A stretch of 64,000 bases of DNA. Source: Adineta vaga. Lineage: Eukaryota; Animalia; Rotifera. Below are positions 40,301-61,300 of the stretch, in pieces. The notes beneath the pieces are model-generated. The model made no database searches. It saw nothing but the letters and a program-made list of their open reading frames with translations, and was not told where the DNA came from. The translations under genes were made by a program, and so were the position numbers. The first letter of the stretch is position 1. Every line of letters begins with the position of its first letter. The stretch is taken from the NCBI GenBank assembly GCA_021613535.1, contig CP075497.1, positions 5,642,001 to 5,706,000 of the forward strand, read 5' to 3'.

Positions 40301-43300
40301 AATGGTATAATGACAGATGCATTATTATTGATGAAATTAACACCGGGTGACTCGGGATTGAGTTCTGAAACTGTTGTTGACGCAGGTGCTCCAATGAATG
40401 TTGCCTGATTGATGTATTGTGGATTGGTCATGCCTATAGTAAAATACAGTGAAAGATGATGAAGCAGGGAGAAAACGTACCATCAATGAGTGGACAAATG
40501 ACACTTGTAGTAGTGGGTGTTCCGGGAGCAAGTGTTGACTGGGTTGGTGGTGGTGTTGATCCTGTGACACCTAGGTAGATGGAAAACGTTTATGTTGAAT
40601 TTTAGACGTTTTTGCTGTGAAAACATCGTTTGATAATAAGAATATGTTCTCTGTAGGACTGAGAATCCGTTGGCGAGCTTTATATAACAGCATTGTACAT
40701 CAGAGCATTTTGCACAATACGAAAGGTTTGGCTGGGGGTTAAAAAAATCAGAAGTCAGAAAACTTTCAGTAGTACACAGAGTGATCTTGTAGTTGTTTTT
40801 GCCTTCGTATATAACTGAGTGCGGTATATGATGTGAAAGAAGTGAAGAATTGTATTCCTACACTCACCTGTCGTTTGCGTCTGTGCACTGGTTACTGTAC
40901 TAATTGTGATTGAAGGTGTTGATCCAGAGATAGTTGGTGGAACTGTTCCAGTCGTTACAACTGTTGTAGCCGTCGATGGTGTGTAACAAGCGATAATGGA
41001 TACAGTCACATCGGTTGGTGCTGCACCATTGGGCGTGTTAAAGATGATTGTGACTGTGCTACCCTCTGGTAGAGGTTGATTATAAGTGACTGCAACTGTT
41101 GGTGTACCAGATGGAGATGTTTGATTGAAGAGAACTGTACCATCGGGCTTTTTCACAATGACAGTGATACTGTCGACATTGGTTGTCGGACTTGGTACAG
41201 AAACTGAACTGAGAATGGGTGTTGTGCCGGATGTGAATGGAATAATGACAGATGCATTATTATTGATGAAATTAACACCAGGAGATTCGGGATTGAGTTC
41301 TGAAACGGTTGTCGACCCAGGTGCTCCGATGAATGTTGCCTGGTTGATGTATTGTGGATTGGTCATGCCTATAGTGGAATGAGGTGAGAGATGATGAAGT
41401 AGAGAGAAAACATACCATCAATGAGTGGACAAATGACACTTGTAGTAGTGGGTGTTCCTGGAGCAAGTGTTGACTGGGTTGGTGGTGGTGTTGATCCTGT
41501 AACACCTAAGTAAATATAAATGGTTATACTTCATTTTACACATGTTCGCTGCGAACGAATCTCATGATAATACGTGGATATTGTCGGTAGGAGGGCGAAT
41601 GGTTTGACAAGCTCATGATAGTAACAGTGATATACTGTATGAAAGATTGGTTTTTTACCAAACAGAAAAGATTTTTATGCTTTCAAAGATTGATTTAAAG
41701 TTTAGAAAAATTGAAGACGTTTTGTGCTTGATCTGTCGAATTTTTTTATGTTTAGTAGGGCCTAGAACGCTGTGCGGTTATCAACAGAGACTATCTGAAG
41801 GTTTTCTACCCGGTTCATGAAACCATTGATAGTTCTGTACCATGTCACAAGACGCTCATGTTTTCGCTCATCTTCTTTGAAACTATTCCTAGTTTCGTAA
41901 ACTTGAAAGTAGTTTGATATAGCTCCTGCTGAACCATCAGTGGTTTTGGAAACTCACTCATGGTTTGATAAAATTTAAATAAAAACTATGAATTGTTTGA
42001 TGCAACGGTTTGGTGTAAGTTATCTGAAACGATCAGTATCATCGTAAAGATTATTCGAGTTCAGTGAACATTCCGGCGGACAAAGCAGTTAGTGACAATA
42101 TGTTATACACTGTATCCTCTCTTCTTCACTTTAGAATCGATGTCCATCGATTTAGTGAAACTACCAACACCCACTCTCACCCACACCTTAACAGCATTCA
42201 CGAAACAGCATTCACGAGAAATCATGGGGATCTTCTAAACAAAGCTTCGAAAGTTGTGTTCTGGAGTGACTGAATATAGAGCCTGTCATATAATAATTAA
42301 AAAAGAGTGTTTCACTGAATCACAAGAAAAAATCAATTCAGAGAAGGTTCCGTAGCTATCGGTTAGTAATAGACCTTTTTTAAGATAGATCTAGCAGGTT
42401 CTGTACTGTATCTATAGTATAGAACTTCCTTTTTGTAAACAGAAGCATTTCCCAGTAGATCTATGCTACGGAAGCTGTTCTGAATTTTTCTACTAAGTTC
42501 CTATCCGGAATCTTCTTTTTACTGAATTAGGAAAGGAGAAATCGTCTTTTGGTTGCGCAAAATACTTTTTAAAGTGTATAGTAGAACGTTCTCCACCATA
42601 CAAAACGATTGACCTGCTGGCTCACAACATCATGAGTCAGAAGACTTTTAGCAGTTCGCTGCGCGATCTTGTACTTGTCTTTCCTTTTGTATATGATTGA
42701 GTGCAATATTCGATGTGAAAGAAGGGAAGAACTGCATTGGTTCACTCACCTGTCGTTTGCGTCTGTGCACCAGTTACTGTACTTATTGTGATTGAAGGTG
42801 TTGATCCAGAGATAGTTGGTGGAACTGTTCCAGTGGTCACAACTGTTGTAGCAGTCGATGGTGTGTAACAAGCGATAATGGATACAGTCACATCAGTTGG
42901 TGCTGCACCATTGGGTGTGTTAAAGATGATTGTCACTGTGCTACCCGCTGGTAGAGGTTGATTATAAGTGACTGCAACTGTTGGTGTACCAGATGGAGAT
43001 GTTTGACTGAAGAGAACTGTACCATCGGGTTGCTTCACAATGACGGTGATACTGTCAACATTAGTGGTCGGACTTGGTACAGAAACTGAACTGAGAATGG
43101 GTGTTGTGCCAGGTGTGAATGGAATAATGACAGATGCATTATTATTGATGAAACTAACACCAGGCGATTCAGGATTGAGTTCTGAAACGGTTGTAGACGC
43201 AGGTGCTCCGATGAATGTTGCCTGATTGATGTATTGTGGGTTGGTCATACCTATAGTAAAATACAGTGAAAGATGATGAAGTAGGCAGAAAGCGTACCAT

Positions 43301-46300
43301 CAACGAGTGGACAAATGACAGTTGTAGTGGTGGGTGTTCCTGGAGCAAGTGTTGATTGGGTTGGTGGCCGTGTTGATCCCGTAACACCTAAACGAGATAA
43401 AAGTGAATTATTGACGTTTTTCATTTTTCTTATCAGAAATTTGGTCAAAATATAAAATAACTCATTAAGTTATGACTCAGGCATACATTGAGAACCTTTC
43501 GTAAGGATCGAATGATCAAAGTGACGCGCACAAATAGATAAATAATGCGACAGAAGAACTGCACATATCCGTCCCGCTGTCACATGTGTGGGTCCACATT
43601 CAATGCTCCTAAAATAGCATGCTTATTACAACTATCAATGATGCTTATTCATACAGCGGACTTCAGTCGAGCTCTGCTCATGATAACAGACCACAACAAT
43701 TAAATATAACGTGGACGTTATTTATTGTATAACCAATTCTTAGAAACATTTCCTTCTACATTACGAACATGCTGACATATCTACTGACCTTAAATCAAGA
43801 AAGGGCATCCATGAAATGGAGTTCTCATCTTTTTGTATGAGTCCACATGATCAAAACGATTATGGAATGGAGCGATTTTAAATACCGTGCTATAACGCGT
43901 CGCTAGCTCATACAGCTCTGCTACGCAAACTACGCACTTTAACAAATCAGTGATATGTGAATGCGCCGGTAGTCACTATCTTACCAGTACTTCCAGGATA
44001 AGCTGTTGAACCTGTACCGGTAGTTCCTTGTGTCACTACAGTTGTCAACGTAGTTATTGTGATTGAAGGCGTTGATCCAGAGATAGTTGGTGGAACTGTT
44101 CCAGTCGTCACAACTGTTGTAGCCGTCGATGGTGTGTAACAAGCGATAATGGATACAGTCACATCAGTTGGCGCTGCACCATTGGGCGTGTTAAAGATAA
44201 TTGTGACTGTGCTACCCTCTGGTAGAGGTTGGTTATAAGTGACTGCAACTGTTGGTGTACCAGATGGAGATGTTTGACTGAAGAGAACTGTACCATCGGG
44301 CTTTTTCACAATGACAGTGATACTGTCGACATTGGTTGTCGGACTTGGCACAGAAATTGAACTGAGAATGGGTGTTGTGCCGGATGTGAATGGAATAATG
44401 ACAGATGCATTATTATTGATGAAATTAACACCAGGAGATTCGGGATTGAGTTCCGAAACGGTTGTAGACCCAGGTGCTCCGATGAATATTGCCTGATTGA
44501 TGTATTGTGGATTGGTCATGCCTATAATAGAATTAGGTGATTGCGATGATGAAGTAGAGAGAAAACATACCATCGATGAGTGGACAGATGACTGTTGTAG
44601 TGGTGGGTGTTCCTGGAGCAACTGTTGATTGGGTTGGTGGCCGTGTTGATTCCTGTAACACCTAAGAATATAGAAACCGTTACACTTCATTCGAGACTTT
44701 TTCATTGCGAACGAATCCTGTAAGAATACGAATTTAGGATCGGTAGGAGTAGGACTTCTGTGATGAAGTAGAAACTGTTGCATGCTACAAAACATTTGAA
44801 TGTGAGTTATAAAAAAGTCAGAAGTCAGAAAGCTTTTAGCAGCTGGGACGGTGATCGTCTAACTGTGTTTCGTTTTGCATATAAATAAGCGTAACATATG
44901 ATGTGAAAATAGTGAAGAATTGAATTTCAACACTAACCTGTGGTTTCGGTCGGTCCAGCGGTTACTGTAGTGATTGTGATTGAGGGTGTTGATCCAGAGA
45001 TAGTTGGTGGAACTGTGCCAGTAGTCACAACTGTTGTAGCCGTCGATGGTGTGTAACAAGCGATAATGGATACAGTCACATCAGTTGGTGCTGCACCATT
45101 GGGTGTGTTAAAGATGATTGTCACTGTGCTACCCACTGGTAGAGGTTGATTGTAAGTGACTGCAACTGTTGGTGTACCAGATGGAGATGTTTGACTGAAG
45201 AGAACTGTACCATCGGGCTTTTTCACAATGACAGTGATACTGTCGACATTCGTTGTCGGACTTGGTACAGAAACTGAACTGAGAATGGGTGTTGTGCCGG
45301 ATGTGAATGGAATAATGACCGATGCATTATTACTGATGAAGGTAACACCAGGCGATTCAGGATTGAGTTCGGAAACGGTTGTAGACGCAGGTGCTCCGAT
45401 GAATGTTGCCTGATTGATGTATTGTGGATTGGTCATACCTATAGTAAAATACAGTGAAAGATGATGAAGTAGAGAGAATACATACCATCAGTGAGTGGAC
45501 AAATGACAGTTGTAGTGGTGGGTGTTCCTGGAGCAAGTGTTGATTGGGTTGATGGTGCTTGTGTTGATCCTGTAACACCTAAACGATACATAAGTGAATT
45601 ATTGACGTTCTTCAGTTTATTATCATAAACTTTGTCAAAATTAAAAGCTCGTCAAAAGGTTTCAGAATAGGTGTATTGTAGCAAACTTCATAGTCATCTA
45701 ATTAGGGCACTGAATATGACACATATATGAAGACTGAACGCGACATTTTTAACATATCGACTGCTTTGAGCATGCTTTCTGTCCACATTCGATGTAAACA
45801 TGAAAGAATCAATAGTTGTAGGGCGCGGAATGTTTCGGATGGACTTCCCTCTCAGAAACCATTTTCCGCTGACAATTGTACTTTGGGTTGAAGTTTTTAG
45901 CGGTTATTAGTCATAGGAAGAAAGGTTTCGGTGAAAAATACCAGCGGTGAAGATTAAATTATGCCCGATTTACAGCTGATCATAGGTCACAGTAAGAGGT
46001 ACTGGGCTGGAGTGGTTTTAGATGAAAGCCTATGTTAATACGTAACTTTTCATTAGACGAGCTTTTGATAGGAATCTTTGCGGATATGCCTGAGAAAAGT
46101 TGATCTCATGGCAATAAGTTCGTTGTCTTTCAGTCAGTGATTCGATTTTACCACAGGAGTTTGATAGGAAGTTTTCTGTGATTGAAACCATCAAAACGCA
46201 AAATGATGATAACACAAATCAGTGAAGAGTTTTATTCCGATATTTCTAACTAAAGCATACAAATTATGTATCTTTCGATCCAGTACAGAAGATTAAGTTT

Positions 46301-49300
46301 AGATATGTAGTTCGTATGCTGACTATCAATTAGCGGTCAGTAATTTGTATACAGTTCATTTCTCTATAGATTTTGAGAAGTTGAATACAGGAAAACCTAC
46401 GAAAATTTTTGAAACATCGTAGTATTATAGTTCACGTTTCTCCCATTGTATTCTGCTAAATTCACCTGTTTCACTAAAACAGATAAATATTCTGGAAGAG
46501 CAGACCTCAGTGCATTGATCGATATAAAACAACAATGAACAGCATTTGTTTTCAAAAAAATTGCCTTTCCTTAGGGGTTTCTCAACTTTTTGACAGTGAA
46601 CAGCAACAGATCCGTCTTGCAGTGTTGCTGAAGAGATACGTTCAGAAACAAAGTCTCCCTACGATCGAAATATGTCTACAGTTAAAGGTACATTTCCTAG
46701 TATATCCATAGGTCGGAGGCCACTCAACTGAGTCCAATTACGACGCAGCATACAGAGTTACATATTTTTCTATTAATTGAATTTTTTTAGGGAGACTTCG
46801 AAAATGAGCGTTTCTTTCTATGTAGTGTTGATACGTGATGCGAGCGCAAGCACTGTCACAAATCAGTAGCATGTAAATGCGGCGGTAATCACTATCTTAC
46901 CAGTACTTCCAGGATAAGCTGTTGAACCTGTAGAACTGGTTTCTTGTGTCACAACAGTTGTAATTGTATTGATTGTGATTGAGGGTGTTGATCCAGAGAT
47001 AGTTGGTGGAACTGTTCCAGTCGTTACAACTGTTGTAGCCGTCGATGGTGTGTAACAAGCGATAATGGATACAGTCACATCAGTTGGTGCTGCACCATTG
47101 GGCGTGTTAAAGATGATTGTCACTGTGCACCCTCTGGTAGAGGTTGATTATAAGTGACTGCAACTGTTGGTGTACCAGATGGAGATGTTTGACTGAAGAG
47201 AACTGTACCATCGGGCTTTTTCACAATGACAGTGATACTGTCGACATTGGTTGTCGGACTTGGCACAGAAATTGAACTGAGAATGGGTGTTGTGCCGGAT
47301 GTGAATGGAATAATGACAGATGCATTATTATTGATGAAATTAACACCGGGTGACTCGGGATTGAGTTCCGAAACGGTTGTAGACCCAGGTGCACCGATGA
47401 ATGTTGCCTGATTGATGTATTGTGGATTGGTCATACCTATAGTAAAATACAGTGAAAGATGATGAAGTAGAGAGAATACATACCATCAGTGAGTGGACAA
47501 ATGACAGTTGTAGTGGTGGGTGTTCCTGGAGCAAGTGTTGATTGGGTTGATGGTGCTTGTGTTGATCCTGTAATACCTAATAGATACAAAAACGTATTAT
47601 TCACGTTTTTTCCTTTGTATAAACTTAATCAAAATATCACAGTAACGAAAACAAATGGATATCGAGTGTGCTAGAAAAATTGCACATATCTTTGCTGTTG
47701 ACATATGTGTTTGTCCACATTTACTCTGTGTAACAGATCAAAATTATTAAACACTATCAAGCATGTTGATTCATATACCCGACTTTCCTCGTTCTCTATC
47801 CATTTTAATAGGAGATAATAATTAAATATGAGGTCAGCGTTGTTTATTCAATCACAAATTCTTAGAAATATCACCTTGTTAGTGCTCATACTACAAAAAT
47901 GAGCGTATTAGTATGTCGAGTGTTGGTGTGTGACGCGAGCGGATACACTTTGTTTACTGAACATAAGCGGTTTCACATACAAATGACATGTGAATAGGAC
48001 AATAGTAACTATCTTACCGGTGCTTCCGGGATAAGCTGTTGAACCTGTAGAGCTGGTTCCTTGTGTCACAACAGTTGTAATTGTATTGATTGTGATTGAG
48101 GGTGTTGATCCAGAGATAGTTGGTGGAACTGTTCCAGTCGTTACAACTGTTGTAGCAGTCGATGGTGTGTAACAAGCGATAATGGATACAGTCACATCAG
48201 TTGGTGCTGCACCATTGGGCGTGTTAAAGATGATTGTCACTGTGCTACCCGCTGGTAGAGGTTGATTATAAGTGACTGCAACTGTTGGTGTACCAGATGG
48301 AGATGTTTGACTGAAGAGAACTGTACCATCGGGCTTTTTCACAATGACAGTGATATTGTCGACATTCGTTGTCGGACTTGGTACAGAAACTGAACTGAGA
48401 ATGGGTGTTGTGCCGGATGTGAATGGAATAATGACCGATGCATTATTACTGATGAAGGTAACACCAGGCGATTCAGGATTGAGTTCGGAAACAGTGGTAC
48501 TTGAAGGTGCTCCGATGAATGTTGCTTGGTTGATGTATTGTGGATTGGTCATACCTATAGTGGAATGAGGTGAGAGAAGATGAAGCAGAGAGAAAACATA
48601 CCATCAATGAGTGGACAGATGACAGTTGTAGTGGTGGGTGTTCCTGGAGCAAGTGTTGATTGAGTTGGTGGCCGTGTTGATCCTGTAACACCTAGGTAGA
48701 TAGAAATGATTACACTTTATTCGAGACATATTTGTTTTGAACGAATCCTATCATAATACCAATCTATAATCTGTAGAAGTGGGAATGCTGTGGCAATCTC
48801 AAGATAACTACAGTGATGAAGTAGAAAGTGTTCGCCGATATGAAACGTTTTAGTGTGGTTTATAGAAAAAGTCCGAAATCATAGAACTTCTGAATGTTCG
48901 CCGAGTGATTTTTTAATTGTGTTTACTTTCGAATATAACTGAATGCCGCATTCTATGTGAGAGAAGGGAAGAACTGCATTGGTTCACTCACCTGTAGTTT
49001 GCGTCTGTGCACTGGTTACTGTACTAATTGTGATTGAAGGTGTTGATCCAGAGATAGTTGGTGGAACTGTTCCAGTCGTTACAACTGTTGTAGCAGTCGA
49101 TGGTGTGTAACAAGCAATAATGGATACAGTCACATCAGTTGGTGCTGCACCATTGGGTGTGTTAAAGATGATTGTCACTGTGCTACCCGCTGGTAGAGGT
49201 TGATTATATGTGACTGCAACTGTTGGTGTACCAGATGGAGATGTTTGACTGAAGAGAACTGTACCATCGGGCTTTTTCACAATGACAGTGATACTGTCGA

Positions 49301-52300
49301 CATTCGTTGTCGGACTTGGCACAGAGACTGAACTGAGAATGGGTGTTGTGCCGGATGTGAATGGAATAATGACCGATGCATTATTACTGATGAAGGTAAC
49401 ACCAGGTGATTCGGGATTGAGTTCGGAAACAGTGGTACTTGAAGGTGCTCCGATGAATGTTGCCTGATTGATGTATTGTGGGTTGGTCATACCTATAGTG
49501 GAATGAGGTGAGTGATGATGAAGTAGAGAGAATACATACCATCAGTGAGTGGACAAATGACAGTCGTAGTGATGGGCGTTGTTGTACTGATGGAAGAAAT
49601 GGACGTTATCGATGAAGAAGTAAATGAAGTTGTTGAAAGTGATGTTGTAGTTGCTGAAATAGAGATTAATATGGCAATGATTGTGGTAAAATTCTCGGGA
49701 AAGAACGCTTTTTAATCATTAGGAAAATGTAGAGTCGACTATTGAACTTACAACCAACTGAGATCGATGAACTAGTTGTCGATGGACTAGTACTGACACT
49801 TGAGGGTTGTCCAGTTGTTGTCGATTTTGGTGAAACCGTGGTTGAAACTACAAATACATTTATTGAGTTAGTAATATTTTTAAAAAAAAGGGGGATTTGA
49901 GTAGACGCGATGATCGTTTTATACTAACGTGTTGTTGATTGAGTTGTTTGTGGAATACATTGAGGAACAACAAGAAGTGGATTATGTATTTCACCTTGTA
50001 TAGTAATTGAATTTACTGCTACAGCACCATCAATATTATGATTTGTTGTCAGTGATGCATATGGCGCAAGAACAGCTCCTCTAATATTGTGATCAAAATT
50101 AATTGTTATTGCCTCAGGAAAATTCCACAAGGTTTTTGATATACTAGATGCATACGGTTGAAACCAGTTACCTACTAAATCTCCTTTCGCCCAATTAATA
50201 TTTTTCCCGTAAACATTGATCAAAATGAATTTCACATTGTTATTGACAATAAGTGCCTCAATTTGTTGCACAGTTGGACCGAATACTGAACTGGCAGAGA
50301 CGTTGAAAATGGCAAAACCATTCTCATCGATATTGACTACATTGAAGTTAAATGGACCATCTTGTGATGATGATGGCATAGTAACATTATTATTAGATGG
50401 TAATTGTACAAGCAGTTGAGATAAAGAAATCATATTTGATATGATTTGAGAACATCTTGCGGGCAAGGTATTATCAACTTGAACTGTTGCATTCTGATTT
50501 CCTTGATTAACTTCTACTGATTTACCATCGATTGTATATTGAATATTACCACTTCCTTTCACTATTCGATTCGATGGATATGGACCTACTGCGATGCTAC
50601 CTGCAAGAGCTTTGAAATTACCATTGATAACTGAACCATTGATTTCCAGTGAATATATAGATGGAGTAAATGTATTTTGATCTAGTTTATCGCCAAAAGT
50701 TGCGCCGTTGACTAAATTACCACAGATGAGAGTTCGAGAATTAACATCTGAAGTTGAGCTGAAATCTGCACGTGTGACAACATTGTATTCGGACATAAAT
50801 GAAAAATACGATGATGAAACACAAGCAGGAACTGTAGTTGTTTGCGTTAGAGATGTTGCTGCTGTGGTTACTGGAATACCTGTATAACAATAGAGTTTTA
50901 AAATTTAATGAATGTATAAGGAATGAAAAATGTTGTCAATCAAGAAATTTTGAAATGAACTGCATATTGAAATAGGATTTTAATGCTTGTATTTTAGCTA
51001 TTTAATCTCTGATATAGAATGTCATTTATCACAATGAATACATCTATATATTTGTGAATAAAAAATTTTCTTATTACCTGTAGTTGTAGGACCCGAAGGT
51101 CCAGTTGTAATAACTGTACCAGTAGTTGTTGAAGCAGATGATGGTAACGCTTAAACGATACATTATAGAATCATTTTTATTTGTTAAATCAAATATATAT
51201 ATACATACATATTGTTGTTTGTGTTGGTGTGGTTGTACAGTTAGGAAAAGTAACAGCCGGTCCAAATACTCCTGACACGTCTAATGATTTGACAGCAACA
51301 GTACCATCGATTCTTGATTGTGTAGCTATTGATGCGCTGGGTGCAAGAATAGCTCCGGCCATTCTTCTACGAAAATTAATTTGTTGTGCGTTATGAAAGT
51401 TCCACACGGTTAACGATCTACCAAGTCCATTTTCTGCAAACCATCCATTATCAAAATTACCAACTGGTCCATCAATAGTCGTTTCATATACATTGATCAC
51501 CATCAATTTCATATTACTATTGGTGATATTTGCTCGAATTTCTTGCACCTTTGAATTACCGAATATTGAACTAGCAGATACATTGAAAATGGCAAAACCA
51601 TTCTGATCAACGTTCACTACATTGAAGGTGAATGGGCCATTTGTGGATGATGGAATTGTAGGATCATTATTAGATGGTAATTGTGCAAGTATTTGAGATA
51701 AAGCAATCATATTTGATATGATTTGAGAACATCGTGCGGGCAAGGTATTATCAACTTGAACTGTTGCATTCCGATTTCCTTGATTCATGTTCGCTTGAAC
51801 TTTTGAATCAATTAGATATTGATTACTATTCTGTTTATTCACTCGATTCAATGGATATGGACCCAGTGCAATACTACCCGCTTGAATATTGATACTATTA
51901 CCACTGACGGAACCATTGATTTCCAGTGAATATACAGATGGAGTAAATGTATTCTGATCTAGTTGTGTGCCAAAAGTGGAGCCTTTAAGTAAACTACCAC
52001 AAACAATGGTTCGATATCCAATATTTGAATTTGATGTTAAACTTTCACGTGTAATAACATTGTATTCTGACATAAATGAAGTGTATGCTGATGAAATACA
52101 AGAAGTAGCTGCGGCTGTAGTTATAACCGTTATGGTGGATGATTGAGCAGCTGTCAAACAAAGAAAATATTCAATCATTCTAAATTCAACGAAGTGTTGC
52201 GTACATCTATCGCTCTGACACAAGAAATAAATTACATGATCCACTTTTAAAGAACTAATTTTGATGAATACGAAAATTGAATTCGATACTTATTACGCGA

Positions 52301-55300
52301 CTTCAAGAGAAGATCAAGACGGTTATTTTTTAAGAATAATGAACACAAAAAAATAAATCCTATCGATTTTACCTGACGTTGAAGGAACTGATGGTACCGT
52401 TGATGAAATTGTTTCATTGGTAATTCCTTTTGAAGATCCTGTATCTAAAAATCAACTTATTTAAAGGTTTTACTGATACTTTATAAACTTATATTACTTG
52501 TGGTTTGCATAGTAACTGTTGAAGAACCTGCCAAGCGAAATTCAGTATATATAAGCATATTATTCTATCAAATCAATTTGTTTGTAATAACTTACCTGAA
52601 GTTAGACTAGTTCCTTGTGATATTGAAGAGGCTGGTGTTGATGAAAAACTTGTTGTTGATGAAAAACTTGTGGTTGATGAATAAGGATAAAAACAAGCCA
52701 TAATAGATAATGTTACATGATGTGATGGCTTTTTATCATATGTATTAAAAGAGATCAATAATGTTGAACCTGGCGGTAATGGAGTTTTTGGAAAACCAGT
52801 AACAACTGTGTCATTAACTGGTGATTGAAGTGTAATAGAACTCGAACCATACGATAGAATAATGAGTACTGTGACCTGATTTACGTTAGTAATTGTTTTA
52901 TTTCCAATAGCTAATGTGACAATTATAGGTGTAATTGATGGAGCAAATTCGATTTCAATTGTAGCATCATTTGAGGCAAATATAACACCGTCACCATTCG
53001 GACGAATATTCGGTGATTGTGGCGTATGACTACCATATATTGTATAATTCAATACATTCTGTGGCTGATCCATACCTTCTTCCAATGAGCACAAATGTGG
53101 TGTACCTATGATGATAAATAACAGAAAAAAATCATCAGTCTTTTCATCGAATATAGTTGAAAAGTACCTGTTGATGTTGCATGACTAATAGTGCTTGGAA
53201 CTGAAGTTAATAAATGATAAATATTAATTATCAGACTAATGTTTTTTTTTAAATTTTAAAAACATACTTGATAGAGTAGTTTCTTCGGGACCTTCTGTGT
53301 GAACAATTTCTGTTTCTTTTTCGTGAGCTGAATAGATATATACGCATACATATAACTATCATAAAATCATTCGAAGATTTTAACTTACTAGTTTTTGTAC
53401 TGCCTAAAGATGTAAATCCTGATGTAGTCGCTAAAAAAATTAAAGAAGAAATTGATTTTTTTTAAAATTGTTTGTTTCTTCTTACAACTGATAAATCGTT
53501 CAGTTGTTATCTGTGATGCTGTAACTAGAAAATAAGATAATATTCTCTCATCATAATAAATTTGAAATATTCTTTTAGAAAAAAAAACCTGTTGATATCG
53601 TCGTTGGTTGTCCACAGATATAAACAGCTAAACGAATATGATAACCTAAGTTAGAATTGTTCTTAGTTCTTGGCACAATTCTGATTTGTTTTGCTTTTAT
53701 TTGATAGAATTTCGTTTCTGAATTTTCTTGATCCTAGATGAAACATAAAACGTATATATATATATATATATATGAAAATTTAAAGACAAACTAAAACGAT
53801 TTCTTTACTTACACTTGCTAGCACATATTCATCACCATTTGATGTTGTATATGAAATACTATAGGATTTTACATTCGAATCCGATAGAATAATCACAGAA
53901 TAAATTGTTTGCTCCAATGGAAAACTGATGGTTATCGCTCCACCATCGACCATTTCAAGACCTTGATCATTTTCTTTGACGAGATTTATAACATCTTTGT
54001 TATTGTAGGAAACTTCCACACCATATGTACTGGTTGCATTTGCAGCAAGAACATTTTCAGGAATGCAAACATATGGGGTGGCTAGAAAGATAGTTTATCT
54101 TGGAACAAAATGTTTTTCAAATAATCAATAATTATTACTTGGTGTTGAAGAAACAGTCGGTGCTGTTCCTGATGTTGTAGAAAAAACTGTGGATCCTAAT
54201 AGAATGAATACGGTTAAATATAAAAAAGAACATCAATTCATCTTGCGTCTCACCCTCTGCACAACCCAATAGTTCTAGTTGCGCTGACAAAACAGTATTA
54301 GTCAATGTTCGATAAAAAGTAAACCGTATAACAAGCACATCAATAATTGGTTGTACAAAGTACACGGTAGTTATTGCCGTTGATGATGATTCTGTTCGTC
54401 GAATAGGCTGAAAACAGAACGATAATTTAATAAAAATAATCAGAAAAGTTAATACAAACATTTCCAGAATATTGAATATTTTTACTTGAAAGTGTATCAT
54501 ATTCAATATGAATTTCTGACACTGTACCACGTATTTCAAAACCAGTTAATGTTTTAGCATTATCTATCAATAAATGAATGTTTGTGAAAAACAAATCGAA
54601 TATGTTTTATTAAATATTTTACTTTGAGAAAAGCGAATTTCAACATTTGGTGTTGCATCATCACTATCAGCACTCCAAAAATTTGGATTATTCATACGAA
54701 TAGCATCCACGCCATCATTCTGGTACTTTTGTGACGAAACAGATATATCACTCGTAGGAATAAGTTGATTCTGTAAACCCATTTTATCATTACACCGATA
54801 TGAAGTAGCTAAAAAGAATTACATAACTCAATCAAACATTTCAACGATGAAAAGAGTCTTACTTTCTGATGAAGACATTGTTGAAGTTAAATATGCTAAA
54901 CAAAAGGAAAAATGTCCATTACAATCTTCCTCTCAACAAATACTTACATGTGGTAGTTGATGTTCCTTAAAAGAAGAAAAATAATCAACTTTTGCTTATT
55001 TTGATAATTGGAATTTATTTACCTGTACAACCCGTGATTTCTAAGGCTGTAATACTGATCGCCTCGTCTTTCGTATTAGAAATGGTCACTGTTAGTTGTG
55101 TTGTTGGTTGTGTCGATGGTGAAGTAATTATAATCGTATATTTTACAGATGTATCAGAAGTCGAAACAATATCACCCATTACTGGAGTATTGGATGGATT
55201 GGTACGAGCATAAAATACGGTCACCGGTTTTGTTGATGTCAAATGGATTTCCATAATTTGATACGGAGATGGAAAGAAAATATTGAATACAACGGTATTC

Positions 55301-58300
55301 TTTTTAATTTCCACCGGTTGTGATGTTGAGATTTCTGGATTTTTCGAAAAATTTTGTATTTGAGGTGATGAGACAGAATATATCAATGATGAAGTAAGTG
55401 TAAATGCCTGATACGTTGATGATGTGTTGGTACAGACTGGAAATGAAAATAATAAATTTTCATTTGATATACTATAGTCAATTCAAGAAATCAAACCTTC
55501 CGGAGTTGTTGTTGTTGTTGAGGGTGTGAGTGTTGTTGTATAATTACAAAGATTGTCATCTTCATCCGTTTTATCCATACAATCAGCATAATTATCACAA
55601 ACACGTGAATTATTGACACATTTACCAAGTGGATTACTCTGAGTAATATCACAGATAAATTGTGTGCATGGAGGTAGAGTACCTTGTTAAAAAGAAATAA
55701 AGAAAAATTATGCATGAAAAATATTGAAATATCATACTTTGGATCTGACATCTAGGATAATTTGGAAACAATTGTGGATTTTCATCAGAACCATCATCAC
55801 AATCTTTTTCACCATCACAAAGTTCTTCTTCGGGAATACAATGGTAGACATTTGATACCAAACATAGCTTAGTCGTACAGACTGATGTAGTAGTTCCTGG
55901 ACTTGTTGATGCTAAAAGTATCAATGAAAATGTTTTAATTAGATACTTATCCTATTCATACATACTTGAGAGAATGGTTGTTGATGTTGCACTTGTCGTT
56001 GGAAAAGGTGTTGTTGATGTTGCACTTGTCGTTGGAAAAAGTGTTGTTGATGTTGCACTTGTCGTTGGAAAAGGTGTTGTTGATTTATCTTTGCAAAAAA
56101 AGATGATATATCGATTATAAAAAAATAGAATAAAGAAACACAGATGACTTACTGCAGTTTGGATGTGTTTCATCATCATTTTTCGGACAATTCGGTACTC
56201 CATCACATAATTTTGTCATATTAATACAGCCTCCTCCATTACATGTATATTCATTTATATTACAAAGACAATTCTTTTCATCTGAACCATCTCTACATTG
56301 TTCTATACCGTCACAAACGTTAGCCACAGGAATGCAGTCACATATGGTTGTACATGCAAATTTATTATCTGTGCACATACAAGTACAATTTTTTTCATCA
56401 CTACCATCACCACAATCATCGTGAGTGTCACAACGTTGTTCTATAGGTAAACATTTACTCATTGGATTATCATTACAACGGAACGCACGACCACTTTCCG
56501 TATCACATTCTGTATGATTACACTGATGTTCATCAGAATTGTCAAAGACACCTTTTTGCGTACAATCAACATGACCATCACATACCCAAGATCGGTCTAT
56601 GCATTTGCCATTGTCACATCGAAAACCATAACATGGATAAGTTTCATTACAGTTGAATTCATCACTTCCATCACGACAATTCGGTAAATTATCACAACGT
56701 TTCGTAGAATTAACACATTGACCATTATCACAAATAAAATCATTAGGTGTACATCCTATAAAACAATGATAATGATTATTTTTTTCAAGACAAAAGAGCC
56801 AATAATAAAGATACGTACCACAATTGAATTCATCGGATTCATCATCACAATCACTTATTTTATCACAAACATGTGATAGAGGAATACATACACCCGTTGA
56901 ATTACATGTAAATTCATTTCGAGAACATTTTGGTACACAATTGGGTAATGGAACACAAAGGAATGTACCATTCGTACATGTACTAGATTCAAAAATAAAG
57001 ATGACTAGAGTCGAAAGAAAATTTGTTAAATTTACCATTGATCACAGTTACGAATAAGTTTTGTTCCAACTGAATAAGGTATATTGTTATCAATACATGG
57101 GCATGCATCTGGTTCAACACATGTACCCGTTTCATCCATAACTTGACCTTCTGGACAAAAACAACCTTCATGACAACCTGAGTCTACACAACTATAATCA
57201 TCTTTTAGATAAATATCTCGACACGTAGATTGACAGATAGCTCCGCAAGCCATATAAATTTTTCCATATTCACATTGCATTGCTACATGTTAAACATAGC
57301 TATTTTGAATTGAAAATTCTTTTGCAAAAAAAGAAAACTTACGGCATCTATCCTGTGTACGCCATTTCACTGGTACTTCGATAGATTGACATTTCTCACC
57401 AAATGTTGAAAGTGATGTACATAAACACTCGCAATCACCACCAGTATCACAACTAGAAAGAAAAATGACATTAGAATGTTCATTATAAATGACAAGACTA
57501 TTTCATACTGGCAAGCATCATAAAGACAATTACGATAATAATCTTGTACAACAGTTGCATCAAGTTTTTCAATACATGGTAAAAATGGATTGGTTTCTGA
57601 TCTATCAATAATCTAGTAATAACATAAAATATTATATAATTATTTTGAAAACTTTCATAGATATGTCAAAGATGACAACTTACCAAAGAACATTCTTTTG
57701 TTGCCCAATTTCTACGTGCTTCAAAGCCAGCACATGGTGCAGAAGGATCTACAACCGGTGATGGTCCAGTTACACATGTTTGTTCAACTTTCCATGATTC
57801 AGCCATATCAGTAATCGTACCTGGAACACCGCTGGCAGTACTAAAAGATATTTTACAGATGTTAATCTATTTTTTTCGAAATGAAGAATGAATTTTTTAC
57901 TTAAGATCATCAGTTGGATCATTATCTGAATCACCACAGAGACCAGCAGTTTGTCCTTTCATATTATAAGGAATAGTGACGTAGATACGTGTTTTTTCAT
58001 CCCATTTGACAATTATATCCGAGCAATTGACAAAAACGAATAAACCTGATTTCATCAATGATACATCACCAAAAACACGATGTCCTAAATCTAGATCTTT
58101 GACTTCCACATCACCGACAATAGGATCTCGACCACGCGTCAAGGAAACTGTTAAACCTTTACATTTGATGAAGATATTTTTCGCACATGTGACACCTGAT
58201 GTACCACATTGTACATTTTCAGTAATTACACGAAATGATAGATCTTTCGTTTGTGTTAAGACATATTTGCAATTGCCTTGATATGAATAATAATTACCAT

Positions 58301-61300
58301 CATATGTTACATAATGTGGATCACCAGATGCCGAACATGTTGCACTACATTTCTGTTCAGTACATATCCATGAACCAGCAGAACATTTACAATCTTTACA
58401 ACCTGATTTAACCGATTGTTCCGGACCATATGAACGGCCAGCATATCGACATGGACAAGCTTTCACATCCACACAAGTTTTTAACTAATGAAGAATTGAT
58501 AGAAAAAATAAACAATATACTTTTCTTTTTTCCTATTCTATATATTTAACTTACATCTTGACTCAGAACTTTCCCATTAGGACATGTACATCCTTCATAG
58601 GTAAGTCCACAATCTCGCCATGTTTTCATATTATCACATGTTTTCACACATGCTGTAGCATTGTATGAATAAACTTGTGTTTCTGGACAAGTTGTTGCTG
58701 CTTCACATGATTGAGAACCACAATTCCATTTTCCATTCGTACATGTACTAAACGAATATTTCAATAAATCATAATAGAAAAAGAAACAATTCTTTCTTAC
58801 CAATTTCCACATGATCTTGCGACTGTTTGGCCTGCTTTAATATAAGTATTTGTTTCAAAATCATAACACGCACAACCACTTTGTGGGACACATTGTGGTT
58901 TGTCTGATACTGAGACATCGAGGTAGGATTGACTTGGACATGAACAACCAGCCATACATTCTCGTTCATAACATGATTGATTAACTACTGAAATGTCATG
59001 ACATGTTTGAGAGCATTTTGGTGCACAATCACTATATGCAGCTCCACCACTACATTGTCCGTATTGTGCATCTTGACATTTAAGTTTAAGATTAGCATCA
59101 CTCATCCAATTAATTGTTATATTCGCTAAACGACATTCACGTGCATATGCAGCAGCAGCTGCGCAAACAAATGTATTTTGAAAATGTGAATTCTTATCAG
59201 AACATAAATCATATTGGCAACTTTGAAAAAATGGAGATGGATCAATTTTTGATGCGCATGCTTGAAATAAAGATGATTTCAAAATTGAACAAGTACTCAT
59301 GGCTCCTGATTGAAGCTAAAATCAAAGAAATACAATTGAATTTTCATATGTGGAAGAATTATTTCATCAGTTCTATACATTGCCGTTAATTGTACATGGA
59401 TCATCTTGATTTGGTGTTGTACATACTGTACTTGTTTTATATTCATCGATGAATGATTGAGTATTTGTATCGACAATTTGTGTACGTATTGAGAAATCAT
59501 TATCACGATTGAAATCAAATGTGCCACATAAACCACGTGTATTATTCACATGTGTAGGATCTAAACGAATATAAACTCGAATACCATCGAATTGAATTTG
59601 AGCACCACGACCTAAACATAAAATCAAATCAATTTTTTAGTTTCATAAAAAAGGACTATATGAGTAAAAATTGCATACAAGTAATCGTATGAAACACCGT
59701 TGTTTCACGTGTCACAGTGACTTCAACATTTTTATATGGTAAAATTGCTCGAATTTCACCATTAATTTGAACATTTTTATCTTTAATGTAAACATATGTT
59801 TGATTACATTTGACAGTTAAATCTTTATAATTTGATGTCGATGTATAAGAATTTGTCATTGCTACATATAGACCAATTGATGGATTGATTTCCTATAGAA
59901 AGATAAAAGAAGACGAATGCTTTTCGTTTAGATCTTCTCTGAACAATGTATAAAAACAAATGATCTTTTACTTCAACTAGAATATATTCACAATTGCCTC
60001 GAACAGAATAGAACTTTCCATCAAATGTTTGAATATGATTTGTTCCAAGTACTGAGCATGTTCTTGAACAATATTTCTTCGTACAAGACCAAGTACCAGT
60101 AACGCATTTACTGTTGAATAAAAAAATAAAATAATCATCAGATTTTCGAAAACAATTATTTTCTTATCAATTCATACCATTCATTACAATCAACTTTAAT
60201 TGAAGCTCCTGCTAGATAATATTTTCCTTCTGCACGACAAGTACATTGTTCAACTTTTGTACATGTTCCATTACGACCAATATCGATGACTGAGCCACTT
60301 GGACATACACAACCTGGTGAACAATCTTTTTTACAATCGACAGAATCTGTAAATTGTTGTCGATAATTTTGACATGTCGATGGACATGATGTTGCACATT
60401 CTGTATAGATTTTTGCATTTTCACAAGATTTTGGACAACGATCAGTTGTTCGCCAATCAATATGCATATAATTATCCTCACAATCACGTCCTACTGCTTC
60501 GAATGAAGAACAAACTGCTTGCTCTTGAGCATTTATACCGTACTTAGCAGCGACACAATGATCACGTTTACATGTTTCATATATTGGTGTAGTATTCAAA
60601 ACACGGTTGCATATTTTAAATGAATCATATGGACTAATAATTGGTCTACAAGCGACTTCAGCAGCATCAATTAAATCTGCAGTACATGGATCTGTAGGTA
60701 CCGGACTTGTAGGACACTAAATCAAGTTAATAGTAACGAAATGTATGATAATTTCATAGTACTTACACCACTATCAGTACGCCATTCATTAGCAAAATGT
60801 GTTGCTGATGCACTGAGTGAACCGTCGGGTAATTGAAGATCATCTGCAAGATTTTTATCAATATAAAATCTAAGAAATCAAATAAAACAAATATTTTCTT
60901 ACCATCACGATTGTTTGTATATGTTCCGCAAAGACCAGTGACTTGTTTCATATAGGTTTGTTCAATTGTAACAGCAACTGTCATACCATCATCCCATTTG
61001 AGACGAACACCATCCGAATAACGTAAATAGGTATAATCTCCAGAACGACGTTCAATTGTCAATGCTAAAAGGAAACAAATATTTCTTTTTCTATTTGATT
61101 TTTGTTATTTTCTCTCTAACACTTACGTCCATCAACATATCCTTGATTATCATTGAGTGCAACATTATTCACGATAACTTTTCTTCCTGTTGCAGTGATA
61201 ATATATCCACCAAATGAAATACTTAGCGACTTTTTACATGTTGTCCATTGATCACAATTGACATTTTGAACAACAACTGTCCAACTACTTGTACCGGATA

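Follow-up and report, generated by a model that had tools for sequence, protein, structure and literature searches.

Two microbial-type choice-of-anchor A domains are spliced in tandem into a giant mucin-like gene of the bdelloid rotifer Adineta vaga

Results

Exon structure and transcripts of the CAA pair

[quoted passage not shown] Exon A, the 5′ member of the pair (51209..52150, -), comprises 942 nt and 314 codons, and exon B, the 3′ member (49929..50879, -), comprises 951 nt and 317 codons. Both start at codon position 2 and have lengths that are multiples of three, and therefore they are of phase 1-1; their in-frame parts are 51210-52148 (-) and 49930-50877 (-), respectively. The two encoded proteins are 56% identical. 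Exon A is flanked at both ends by short Thr/Ser-rich linkers, and a Pro/Thr/Ser-rich linker exon of 72 nt, also of phase 1-1, lies between the two CAA exons (51078..51149, -). The domain searches and fold predictions described below were run exon by exon, and the frame in which the linker exon continues over its splice sites was determined by eye.

The splice joints were located with assembled RNA contigs. Exon A is joined at both sides (52150|52373 and 51149|51209, -) in contigs of the runs X1, X3, and X9, and the linker exon is joined at 51149|51209 and 50876|51075 (cut +3). Accordingly, four introns surround the pair. The intron 5′ of exon A (52151..52372, -; 222 nt, GT..AG) is skipped in the RNA contigs of the three runs but covered by the DNA run X7. 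The introns between exon A and the linker exon (51150..51208, -; 59 nt) and between the linker exon and exon B (50880..51077, -; 198 nt) are given by RNA contig joints, in the latter case together with a reading of the sequence. The intron 3′ of exon B (49848..49928, -) has a length of 81 nt, with GT at 49928-49927 and AG at 49849-49848; in the RNA, this joint is seen as 49845|49932 with five letters between, blurred by two adjacent allelic differences. A single RNA contig contains both CAA exons with the linker exon between them, while another contains exon A spliced to upstream micro-exons and the exon of a jelly-roll module. Altogether, GT..AG joints were found in RNA contigs from three runs and two studies, and the DNA run X7 yielded zero splice joints at the CAA locus.

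An initial annotation, made from the sequence, had described two paralogous, intron-free, phase-1 exons of about 315 codons at 49929-52150. The joints showed that these coordinates are exact, the description of the exons fits, and the exons are indeed included in mRNA, joined to one another and to flanking exons. The further statement that long intron-free exons stand out amid short ones applies in part. The neighboring exons otherwise measure 28-508 nt, but an open frame with six LDL-receptor repeats (924 nt) is long as well, and so is a repeat exon (about 7 kb).

Architecture of the host gene

The CAA exons are part of a giant gene with an animal-type architecture. In 5′ to 3′ direction, the order is VWD-C8-TIL, six LDL-receptor class A (LDLa) repeats, two divergent jelly rolls, the two CAA domains, and about 20 further jelly rolls, and Thr/Ser-rich linkers are found around every module. 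Exons for VWD, C8, and TIL domains (PF00094, PF08742, PF01826), which form N-terminal assemblies of the mucin/VWF type, are located at 57897..60599 (-), and further VWD and EGF-like open frames extend to about 62.0 kb. The six LDLa repeats (PF00057, E 1e-47, six stretches) occupy one open frame of 924 nt (56115..57038, -). One of the divergent jelly-roll modules (55015..55386, -) aligns with the repeated modules and is 42% identical to the colinear region of another bdelloid contig, L005. The other one (52594..53101, -) lies just 5′ of the CAA pair; it is 33% identical to the repeated module and 50-52% identical to the colinear module of L005 and of a second bdelloid contig, L006. It is linked to exon A by two micro-exons (52373-52444 and 52498-52525, -) that are present in an RNA contig. 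A single transcript from the VWD exons to the repeat exon at the 3′ end is supported in part by the RNA, in which one 3.4-kb contig continues 2.8 kb further 5′ than the stretch that was compared.

On the 3′ side, open frames for about 20 nearly identical modules of about 140 amino acids, with Thr-rich linkers and introns, extend over 24471..49490 (-). The AlphaFold (AF2) model of the repeat module has a pLDDT of 87 and is a galactose-binding-like jelly roll, and Foldseek matched it to CBM32, fucolectin, discoidin, and DOC domains with TM values of 0.55-0.60. The 3′ part of the same-strand gene run is a giant repeat exon (16777..23979, -), a 2400-aa open frame of Tyr-bearing decapeptides with a GC content of 0.44-0.51 and a strong GC skew. 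This Tyr-rich exon probably belongs to the same gene as the CAA pair.

The initial annotation had mentioned SCO-spondin and mucins in connection with the animal scaffold. No thrombospondin type 1 repeats were present in the open frames of the host gene that were scanned; with its repeated VWD-C8-TIL and its Pro/Thr/Ser-rich regions, the scaffold looks like that of a gel-forming mucin or VWF. It has in common with gel-forming mucins, VWF, and SCO-spondin the N-terminal VWD-C8-TIL part, the Thr/Ser/Pro linkers, and the giant size, and with SCO-spondin also the LDLa repeats. In contrast to all of these, the center does not consist of a plain PTS domain but of the CAA pair, jelly rolls, and Tyr-decapeptides. 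The occurrence of a CAA pair inside a giant animal-type mucin-like gene is a new and previously undescribed architecture.

Identity and predicted fold of the domains

The open frames of both exons were matched by the Pfam model PF20597 (pAdhesive_15), with 102.2 bits for exon B (49924-50796) and 99 bits for exon A (51189-52244), at a cut-off of 23.8. The model TIGR04215, which had been proposed as a check, gave a divided result: exon B scored 116 bits (cut-off 29), whereas exon A was not matched even at E<=1. In view of the Pfam score of 99 bits, the failure with exon A was treated as a limit of that model. The motif pattern behind the first assignment was similarly uneven. Of the three C-terminal motifs, GAxLAPxA and IDG are present in both exons, but GExH only in exon B, and exon A has SGVF at this position. 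Nevertheless, the assignment to the choice-of-anchor A family was borne out by the PF20597 scores and the predicted fold. The CAA carrier has no LPXTG, PEP-CTERM, or T9SS sorting signal but is an animal VWD/LDLa mucin-like gene. Anchor signals are a feature of the bacterial proteins and not of the domain, and thus the membership in the family stands.

The exon B model (AF2, pLDDT 91.6) predicts a beta-solenoid of about 280 residues with a long packing helix (138-157) that is flanked by strands. Comparison with DUF3494 ice-binding structures (VIA-align) gave a Z value of 16.3 and an rmsd of 2.8 Å over 190 residues. ComZ was matched with Z 14.2, and tapirin-like adhesins were matched more weakly (Z 7-8). 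Models of bacterial pAdhesive_15 clusters from the ESM Atlas aligned with TM values of 0.73-0.80 and an rmsd of 2.3-2.5 Å. The expected beta-solenoid, similar to that of ice-binding proteins, was thus recovered by prediction. When the CAA alignment was used as a profile against the PDB, the matches did not exceed chance level (E 0.05, TIR-like proteins), and therefore structure comparison was required to establish the link between the folds.

Two pairs of cysteines deserve attention. Cys residues at both ends of the domain had been taken as a resemblance to the native modules of the host gene. However, homologues from outside the rotifers also have the terminal cysteines (17/29 and 19/20 rows), which were thus brought along by the domain family and do not reflect a fit to the native modules; a Cys19-Cys307 bond is predicted for them. 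In contrast, Cys52 and Cys142 (exon B numbering) are invariant in the rotifers (36/36 and 37/37 rows) and absent from all other sequences compared (0 of 30-33 rows). A bond between the members of this rotifer-specific pair is likewise predicted; it probably fastens the helix to the solenoid, which would suit a secreted protein.

Tandem copies and probable gene conversion

A sliding-window codon comparison of the two exons revealed a tract of high similarity, which comprises codons ~118-157 of exon A (51678..51797, -) and the matching region of exon B (50401..50520, -). The DNA identity is 92-98%, third positions included, and dS is 0.06-0.11 inside the tract versus 0.43-0.67 outside. The tract is likely to be a gene-conversion tract, a process by which the tandem copies would be kept partly alike. 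The dN/dS value of exon A versus exon B is high (0.67-0.75), and this could indicate relaxed constraint on one copy; exon A is the copy without GExH, a motif that it has lost, and without a TIGR04215 match.

Conservation and other bdelloid CAA genes

The two other bdelloid contigs, L005 and L006, are colinear with the host gene. The identities are 65% for C8-TIL, 71% for VWD, 56-63% for LDLa, 42-60% for the modules, and 49-55% for CAA. An LDLa stretch of L005 holds a stop codon. With L005 as the reference, dN/dS is lowest for VWD (0.06), followed by CAA (0.21-0.25) and the modules (0.29-0.41); these values are rough, with interspecies dS near saturation, and for C8-TIL, dS is saturated. At the level of these sequence comparisons, purifying selection on the CAA domains is demonstrated.

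The A. vaga genome contains four CAA copies, all on Thr/Pro-rich stalks in mucin-like genes, and the domain occurs in at least three different embeddings, i.e., N-terminal, C-terminal, and as an internal tandem. The C-terminal type is represented by a CAA-tipped giant mucin (L004) on contig C1, which has a domain of the same clade and a long Thr/Pro-rich stalk. It differs from the CAA-pair gene in having a single CAA domain, no intron between stalk and domain, a domain of another rotifer CAA subfamily (34-40% identity), and no VWD/LDLa part in the locus that was read. Other bdelloids have stand-alone CAA genes. P0090 from Didymodactylos combines a clear signal peptide with the domain and nothing else; three others, P0066, P0073, and P0134, adjoin ordinary rotifer genes. 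In P0050, LDLa, CAA, CAA, and a module are united in one intron-less open frame. A search of 14 control genomes with PF20597 gave no match in any of them.

Relatives of the rotifer domains

An exhaustive search of 1.84 billion representatives yielded only 485 CAA matches. In a maximum likelihood tree, the rotifer sequences form one clade with a support of 100/100; it has 60 rows, part of which were verified as rotifer. L070, L071, and L073 were confirmed as bdelloid by neighboring genes that are 66-71% identical to the A. vaga genome, and P0090 and P0053 are named as Didymodactylos carnosus. Most of the matches are without a taxon name. Those close relatives whose source was verified are bdelloid without exception, and the remaining family, as far as identified, consists of bacterial sequences and one diatom cluster.

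In the unrooted tree, the rotifer clade lies in a polytomy with Phaeodactylum, Chloroflexota-type SpaA/SdrD_B proteins, and Saprospiraceae. By identity, the nearest sequences are four Chloroflexota-type proteins (P0057, P0059, P0060, and P0065; 43-45%). Phaeodactylum, the sole diatom cluster identified among the matches, has 37% identity and forms part of the polytomy; a clade of rotifers and Phaeodactylum was neither recovered in the tree nor rejected (p-AU 0.41). A word-indexed search with a mixed rotifer/diatom/bacterial alignment found 17 proteins and no new named taxa except Didymodactylos. A contig scan was seeded by the motif WNF...A and is thus biased to Planctomycetota, Verrucomicrobiota, and Gammaproteobacteria (25-38% identity); the closer Chloroflexota-type relatives surfaced only in the exhaustive search.

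Discussion

Origin of the CAA domains

The results support a horizontal, non-animal origin of the rotifer CAA domains. This agrees with a published survey of NCBI nr, PLAZA, and MMETSP, according to which CAA domains are, for the most part, confined to bacteria, rotifers, and diatoms (bioRxiv 10.1101/2023.03.06.531300). The same paper lists the bdelloids Rotaria, Adineta, and Didymodactylos as holders of CAA domains and, in 2023, already described their horizontal transfer, with diatoms proposed as the donor and diatom type-2 sequences linked to those of rotifers (bioRxiv 10.1101/2023.03.06.531300). The proposal of a horizontal acquisition in the initial annotation is therefore sustained by the bdelloid-only verified relatives and the fully supported clade beside bacterial and diatom sequences, but it is not new.

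It can be asked whether a transfer took place at all, or whether the domain is ancient and vertically inherited or results from contamination or misassembly. The composition indeed carries no foreign signal. The CAA exons have a GC content of 0.35-0.37 and a GC3 of 0.21-0.22, compared with 0.14-0.19 in native exons, and are thus host-like; moreover, the donor position in the tree is a polytomy. However, vertical descent is at odds with the verified close relatives, which are all bdelloid, with the bacterial and diatom identity of the rest, and with the restricted distribution found in the published survey. Contamination and misassembly were rejected because of the RNA splicing to animal-type exons, the host-like composition, and the colinear orthologues in independent assemblies. 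In addition, the exons lie on a chromosome-scale contig, and the same arrangement recurs in other bdelloid assemblies. Hence, the absence of any transfer is highly improbable. Spliced with GT..AG joints to animal-type exons and with a host-like GC3, the CAA domain is a physical part of the host genome and is expressed through host signals. A neighboring DUF229 gene is 91% identical to that of Adineta ricciae and 81-85% identical to those of Rotaria. The host-like composition and the chimeric architecture, which is common to other bdelloid species, indicate that the transfer event is old.

The initial annotation had favored the transfer of a domain rather than of a whole gene, i.e., the direct insertion of a foreign fragment with the CAA domain alone into a mucin gene as an exon. 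The intron-free exons with symmetric 1-1 phases and about one domain each would fit such an event, as would the location of all four A. vaga copies in mucin-like genes. However, the stand-alone bdelloid genes, one of them with a signal peptide, argue against it, and stand-alone and embedded forms are interspersed in the tree, although the rotifer clade is unrooted, so that its first state is unreadable. The three or more embeddings in one genome and the intron-less P0050 are also better explained by repeated shuffling within the genome. Therefore, direct insertion is regarded as unlikely, and the claim was not upheld; a whole-gene transfer that was followed by within-genome shuffling is at least as likely. 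We suggest that CAA genes entered the bdelloid lineage from a non-animal donor, either bacterial or diatom. The most likely history would be the acquisition of a whole gene in an early bdelloid, after which the intron-less domain may have been shuffled repeatedly into mucin genes.

Comparison with bacterial and diatom CAA proteins

The rotifer domains belong to the same family as the bacterial choice-of-anchor A proteins (TIGR04215/PF20597), as judged by HMM scores and the model comparison, and share the terminal Cys pair with them. The bacterial carriers include Chloroflexota and Gram-positive proteins with SpaA/SdrD_B as well as PEP-CTERM proteins of Planctomycetota and Verrucomicrobiota. 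The rotifer version differs from them by its animal mucin scaffold, the extra Cys pair, introns, host codon usage, and the lack of a sorting signal. Eukaryotic counterparts are the Trailins of the diatom Craspedostauros australis (CaTrailin1-4), secreted proteins that combine a horizontally acquired CAA domain with Pro/Thr/Ser-rich regions (bioRxiv 10.1101/2023.03.06.531300). The same ice-binding-like beta-solenoid is predicted for them. In contrast, they have no homology to the rotifer gene outside of CAA, and VWD-C8-TIL, LDLa, a tandem of CAA domains, about 20 jelly rolls, and CAA exons flanked by spliceosomal introns distinguish the rotifer gene from the Trailins.

Possible functions

Ice binding had been considered in the initial annotation, and the fold match to DUF3494 proteins (Z 15-16) would be compatible with CAA domains that bind ice crystals and aid survival of freezing like the rotifer DUF3494 proteins. 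Bdelloids survive freezing and have acquired bacterial DUF3494 (PF11999) genes, for one of which ice-binding activity was demonstrated (PMC11912409). However, the support does not extend beyond the shared fold. PF11999 did not match at E<=0.1, and for both exons PF20597 was the sole assignment, with DUF6252 below the threshold. The identity to ice-binding proteins is 9-13%, the CAA domain has about 60-80 extra residues, and the motif T-A/G-x-T/N is present in neither domain, with a single match in the N-terminal linker of exon B. The fold is also used by ComZ, which is not an ice protein, and is more weakly matched by tapirin-like adhesins. Furthermore, five DUF3494 loci elsewhere in the genome would already be available for this task, and the bdelloid DUF3494 genes are intron-less, stand alone, and lie outside of mucins. 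For the diatom CAA domain, an analysis of ice-binding motifs and ordered surface carbons led to the verdict that ice binding is highly unlikely. Taken together, ice binding by the CAA pair is unlikely, and a role in cryoprotection has a very low probability.

An adhesive role is most likely for the CAA pair, by analogy with bacterial surface proteins and with the Trailins, which are CAA proteins with PTS-rich regions in diatom adhesive trails (bioRxiv 10.1101/2023.03.06.531300). In the host protein, the VWD-C8-TIL part would link chains into a polymer by disulfide bonds, in the manner of VWF and gel-forming mucins, and the Thr/Ser/Pro linkers would be O-glycosylated. The CAA pair and the lectin-like modules may jointly make up the head by which such an extracellular polymer, serving as an adhesive or a coat, binds to surfaces or glycans. 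On balance, we favor the view that a tandem of CAA domains from a non-animal donor serves in this way in a giant mucin-like gene, and such a role appears rather probable by analogy.

The polymer might instead form a coat on the gut, the corona, or the egg, in which bacteria, fungi, or particles of food would be captured by the CAA and lectin-like modules. The N-terminus of gel-forming-mucin type and the approximately 20 CBM32/fucolectin-like modules fit a glycan-binding barrier, and the fairly fast evolution of CAA and modules (dN/dS about 0.2-0.5) is common among microbe-facing proteins. However, the CAA proteins known from eukaryotes, i.e., the Trailins of diatoms, serve in adhesion to substrates, and a function in mucosal defense or particle capture is judged to be improbable. 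It departs from the adhesive reading solely in the target that is bound.

In a more specific version of the adhesive role, the gene would encode a composite bioadhesive, either the cement that the pedal glands provide for the bdelloid foot or a component of the body coat, in which mucin polymerization domains, about 20 jelly rolls, Tyr-decapeptides similar to mussel foot proteins, and two microbial adhesive heads would be combined. This version is speculative and has a rather low probability. Literature searches for adhesive proteins of rotifer pedal glands found nothing relevant, and the literature on Adineta and von Willebrand domains concerns VWA genes and not the CAA-pair gene. If the version is true, an attachment organ of an animal would owe one of its working parts to horizontal transfer, as a counterpart to the diatom Trailins.

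Implications

Bdelloid rotifers are the textbook example of large-scale gene import into an animal, and most of the described cases are whole, intron-less genes for enzymes. The significance of the present case is limited by the facts that the presence and foreign origin of CAA in bdelloids have already been published and that horizontal transfer into bdelloids is unsurprising. Here, an imported structural domain has been turned into an ordinary shuffled exon that is present in tandem in a conserved giant protein, presumably an extracellular one, and is spliced and under selection. The case shows a route by which extracellular matrix genes can take up foreign domains into their pool of shuffled exons, and the host gene is a specific candidate for a molecule that underlies adhesion or mucus in rotifers.

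Two choice-of-anchor A exons are spliced into one mRNA

[quoted passage not shown] These scores far exceed the cut-off of 23.8 bits, the family was found at only four places in the genome (six contigs, 100.8 Mb), and a PF20597 search of 14 control genomes yielded zero matches, and therefore a chance match is excluded. Single exons were used as queries for domain searches and fold predictions. Exon B matched the NCBIfam model TIGR04215 (choice-of-anchor A) with 116 bits, but exon A (51210–52148, minus strand) had no TIGR04215 match even at E ≤ 1, despite its PF20597 score. The two exons share 56% identity, and exon A has lost the GExH motif. The initial annotation had observed two CAA exons, and this was confirmed in full: PF20597 recovered both exons and TIGR04215 exon B alone.

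Contigs of four public sequencing runs were aligned to window positions 48900–53200. Runs X1, X3 and X9, which come from two studies, behaved as RNA, and their contigs skipped minus-strand GT..AG introns at 52151–52372, 51150–51208, 50880–51077 and about 49848–49928, as well as additional introns on either side of the CAA region. The contigs of the fourth run (X7) spanned the introns with zero joints, showing that it is DNA. Exon A (51209–52150, 942 nt), a Pro/Thr/Ser linker exon (51078–51149, 72 nt) and exon B (49929–50879, 951 nt), all on the minus strand and all phase 1-1 according to the open frames and sequence reading, were joined within a single RNA contig. A second RNA contig led from exon A via micro-exons at 52373–52444 and 52498–52525 to a module exon at 52594–53101, and a 3.4-kb RNA contig extended 2.8 kb further 5′. 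The splice joints agree exactly with the previously proposed boundaries of 49929–52150, and both CAA exons are included in the mRNA. One X1 RNA contig lacked 18 nt of the module exon at 52655 (minus strand) that the contigs from the other runs retained. Either alternative splicing or an allelic indel that keeps the frame may account for this difference in the Ser/Thr-rich module tail. Single-base differences between the runs were numerous and suggest allelic or strain variation.

The host gene resembles a gel-forming mucin

The host gene runs on the minus strand from high to low coordinates. An open-frame scan revealed EGF-like and VWD frames at about 60.8–62.0 kb, which are followed by Pfam matches to two C8-TIL exons, a VWD exon and six LDLa repeats. 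Next come two divergent modules at 55.0–55.4 kb (55015–55386) and 52.6–53.1 kb (52594–53101), the CAA pair, about 20 near-identical open-frame modules of about 140 residues (24471–49490), and a 7-kb repeat exon (16777–23979) with a 2400-residue open frame, a GC content of about 0.5 and a strong GC skew. Judging by same-strand order, the repeat exon probably belongs to the same gene. Its array of Tyr decapeptides is reminiscent of mussel foot protein 1 and would fit an adhesive protein. Neither the divergent nor the near-identical modules had a Pfam match. The predicted fold of the repeat module is a galactose-binding-like jelly roll (pLDDT 87), and the model is similar to CBM32, fucolectin, the lectin domains of lectinolysin, discoidin/neuropilin b1 and DOC domains (TM 0.55–0.60). 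No thrombospondin repeats were seen in the open frames scanned, and a gel-forming mucin or VWF is a better match to the scaffold than SCO-spondin is. Elsewhere in the window, a DUF229/sulfatase-like gene (10675–11871, plus strand) had bdelloid rotifers as its best named matches (Adineta ricciae 91%, Rotaria 81–85%; Nematostella 30%).

The architecture is shared by other bdelloids

A word-indexed search yielded "proteins" of 290–430 residues with 41–56% identity, which proved to be open frames predicted on contigs of eukaryotic metagenomes. On one bdelloid contig (L005), VWD, TIL and LDLa genes precede a CAA frame; on another (L006), module frames come after a pair of CAA frames. By tblastn, both contigs proved colinear with the gene in the window (C8-TIL 65%, VWD 71%, LDLa 56–63%, modules 42–60%, CAA 49–55%), and thus the chimeric architecture is older than the split of these species. 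L006 also holds orthologous module arrays. In a 992-aa protein of another bdelloid CAA subfamily (P0050, from the representative library), a run of three LDLa repeats precedes a pair of CAA domains and one module, all within a single uninterrupted open frame, showing that the same domain order exists without the introns of the window gene.

The CAA exons (GC 0.35–0.37, GC3 0.21–0.22) were indistinguishable in composition from the VWD/LDLa exons (GC3 0.14–0.19). Between the window and L005, dN/dS was 0.21–0.25 for the CAA exons, 0.29–0.41 for the jelly-roll modules and 0.06 for the VWD exon, figures that are rough because dS is near saturation. The CAA domains are constrained yet fast-evolving, like the modules around them.

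In each of the four species sampled, the tandem CAA copies were mutual nearest relatives (window A/B, P0049, P0050, and P0005/P0015 of L006). The identity of the window copies is a mosaic: codons ~118–157, a tract of about 120 nt (minus strand, 51678–51797 in exon A and 50401–50520 in exon B), are 92–98% identical in DNA, third positions included, and the remainder is 50–80% identical (C-terminal third 50–65%). The dS between the window copies was 0.46, lower than between orthologues (0.75–1.7). Gene conversion between the tandem exons is the simplest reading of these sequences, repeated independent duplication being the alternative.

Probable foreign ancestry and shuffling of the domain

An exhaustive search of 1.84 billion representatives yielded only 485 proteins at E ≤ 0.001. 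In an IQ-TREE analysis of 70 domains, all 37 rotifer-type rows formed a single clade with 100/100 support, and the same clade was recovered with 60 rows in a larger FastTree and in quick trees. Rotifer membership was checked for part of the clade, namely three contigs with neighbouring genes 66–71% identical to genes at 4.50–4.56 Mb of contig C1 of the A. vaga genome (L070, L071, L073), two proteins annotated as Didymodactylos carnosus (P0090, P0053), and P0050. Outside the clade, a polytomy was formed by a cluster from the diatom Phaeodactylum tricornutum at 37% identity, by Chloroflexota-type surface proteins bearing SpaA and SdrD_B domains at 43–45%, one of them from Litorilinea, and by a Saprospiraceae group; CAA domains of Verrucomicrobiota, Planctomycetota and Proteobacteria lay further out. 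A clade of rotifers and diatoms was not rejected by the AU test (p 0.41). A published study reports CAA domains mainly from bacteria, rotifers and diatoms, and it states that three bdelloids, Rotaria, Adineta and Didymodactylos, received diatom type-2 domains (bioRxiv 10.1101/2023.03.06.531300). These data are consistent with a single uptake by an early bdelloid, from a bacterial or a diatom donor, and with diversification afterwards.

The initial annotation was judged right in domain identity, foreign ancestry and exonisation, but its direct domain-level transfer was overstated. Other bdelloids possess CAA genes that stand alone: in P0090 the domain is preceded by a signal peptide and followed by a short tail, and P0066, P0073 and P0134 are located among ordinary rotifer genes. 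The A. vaga genome contains three embeddings, an N-terminal CAA domain before a Pro/Thr stalk (L001), a C-terminal one after a long stalk (L004) and the internal tandem pair of the window gene. Because of these forms, and because stand-alone and embedded domains are interspersed in the unrooted tree, we favour a history in which a whole gene was probably acquired and its intron-less, phase-compatible domain was then shuffled repeatedly. Stand-alone genes on other bdelloid contigs (L070:711–1625, L071:308–1252, L073:211–2204) lie beside a Peptidase_S51 or an acetyltransferase gene. The orthologous A. vaga region at C1:4.50–4.56 Mb had no CAA match, which suggests loss in this genome or gain in the others.

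Predicted fold and a rotifer-specific cysteine pair

The model of exon B, built from an alignment of 28 relatives, was predicted with a pLDDT of 91.6 and a pTM of 0.88, with strands wrapping a long helix (residues 138–157). The top Foldseek matches in the PDB were all DUF3494 ice-binding proteins. VIA-align scored these proteins at Z 16.3 (rmsd 2.8 Å, 190 residues), ahead of ComZ (Z 14.2) and tapirin-type adhesins (Z 7–8). Bacterial pAdhesive_15 clusters were the closest models in the ESM Atlas (TM 0.73–0.80, rmsd 2.3–2.5 Å), and a language-model search agreed with this assignment.

Cys52 and Cys142 of exon B (codons at about 50722–50724 and 50452–50454, minus strand) are invariant in 36–37 rotifer rows and absent from all 30–33 bacterial and diatom rows. 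Their positions are the second coil and the beginning of the long helix; to judge from this pattern, the pair probably forms an added lineage-specific disulfide by which the helix would be stapled to the solenoid. Non-rotifer kin also carry the terminal Cys19 and Cys307.

Possible function

Most likely, the CAA pair would bind surfaces or glycans as the head of a polymer predicted to be secreted, O-glycosylated and polymerised through disulfides. This role is favoured because the carrier is mucin-like, lectin-fold modules are abundant, bacterial CAA domains are carried by surface adhesins, and Trailins occur in adhesive trails. The diatom Trailins, components of these trails, are the only studied eukaryotic CAA proteins (bioRxiv 10.1101/2023.03.06.531300). 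Ice binding, which had also been proposed, is unlikely. Neither CAA domain contains an ice-binding motif, the exons did not match PF11999 (DUF3494) in the Pfam scan, and a diatom CAA domain failed ice-binding predictors (bioRxiv 10.1101/2023.03.06.531300). In addition, the genome already has five separate DUF3494 loci with uninterrupted open frames (C3:18943400, C6:1172320, C3:18628793, C1:16604855 and C3:17574347), in agreement with published bacterial-derived bdelloid genes, and proteins of the same kind bind ice in Antarctic bdelloids (PMC11912409). The novelty implied by the initial annotation was overstated; what is new is the conserved architecture of animal mucin domains, lectin-like modules and tandem imported adhesin domains.
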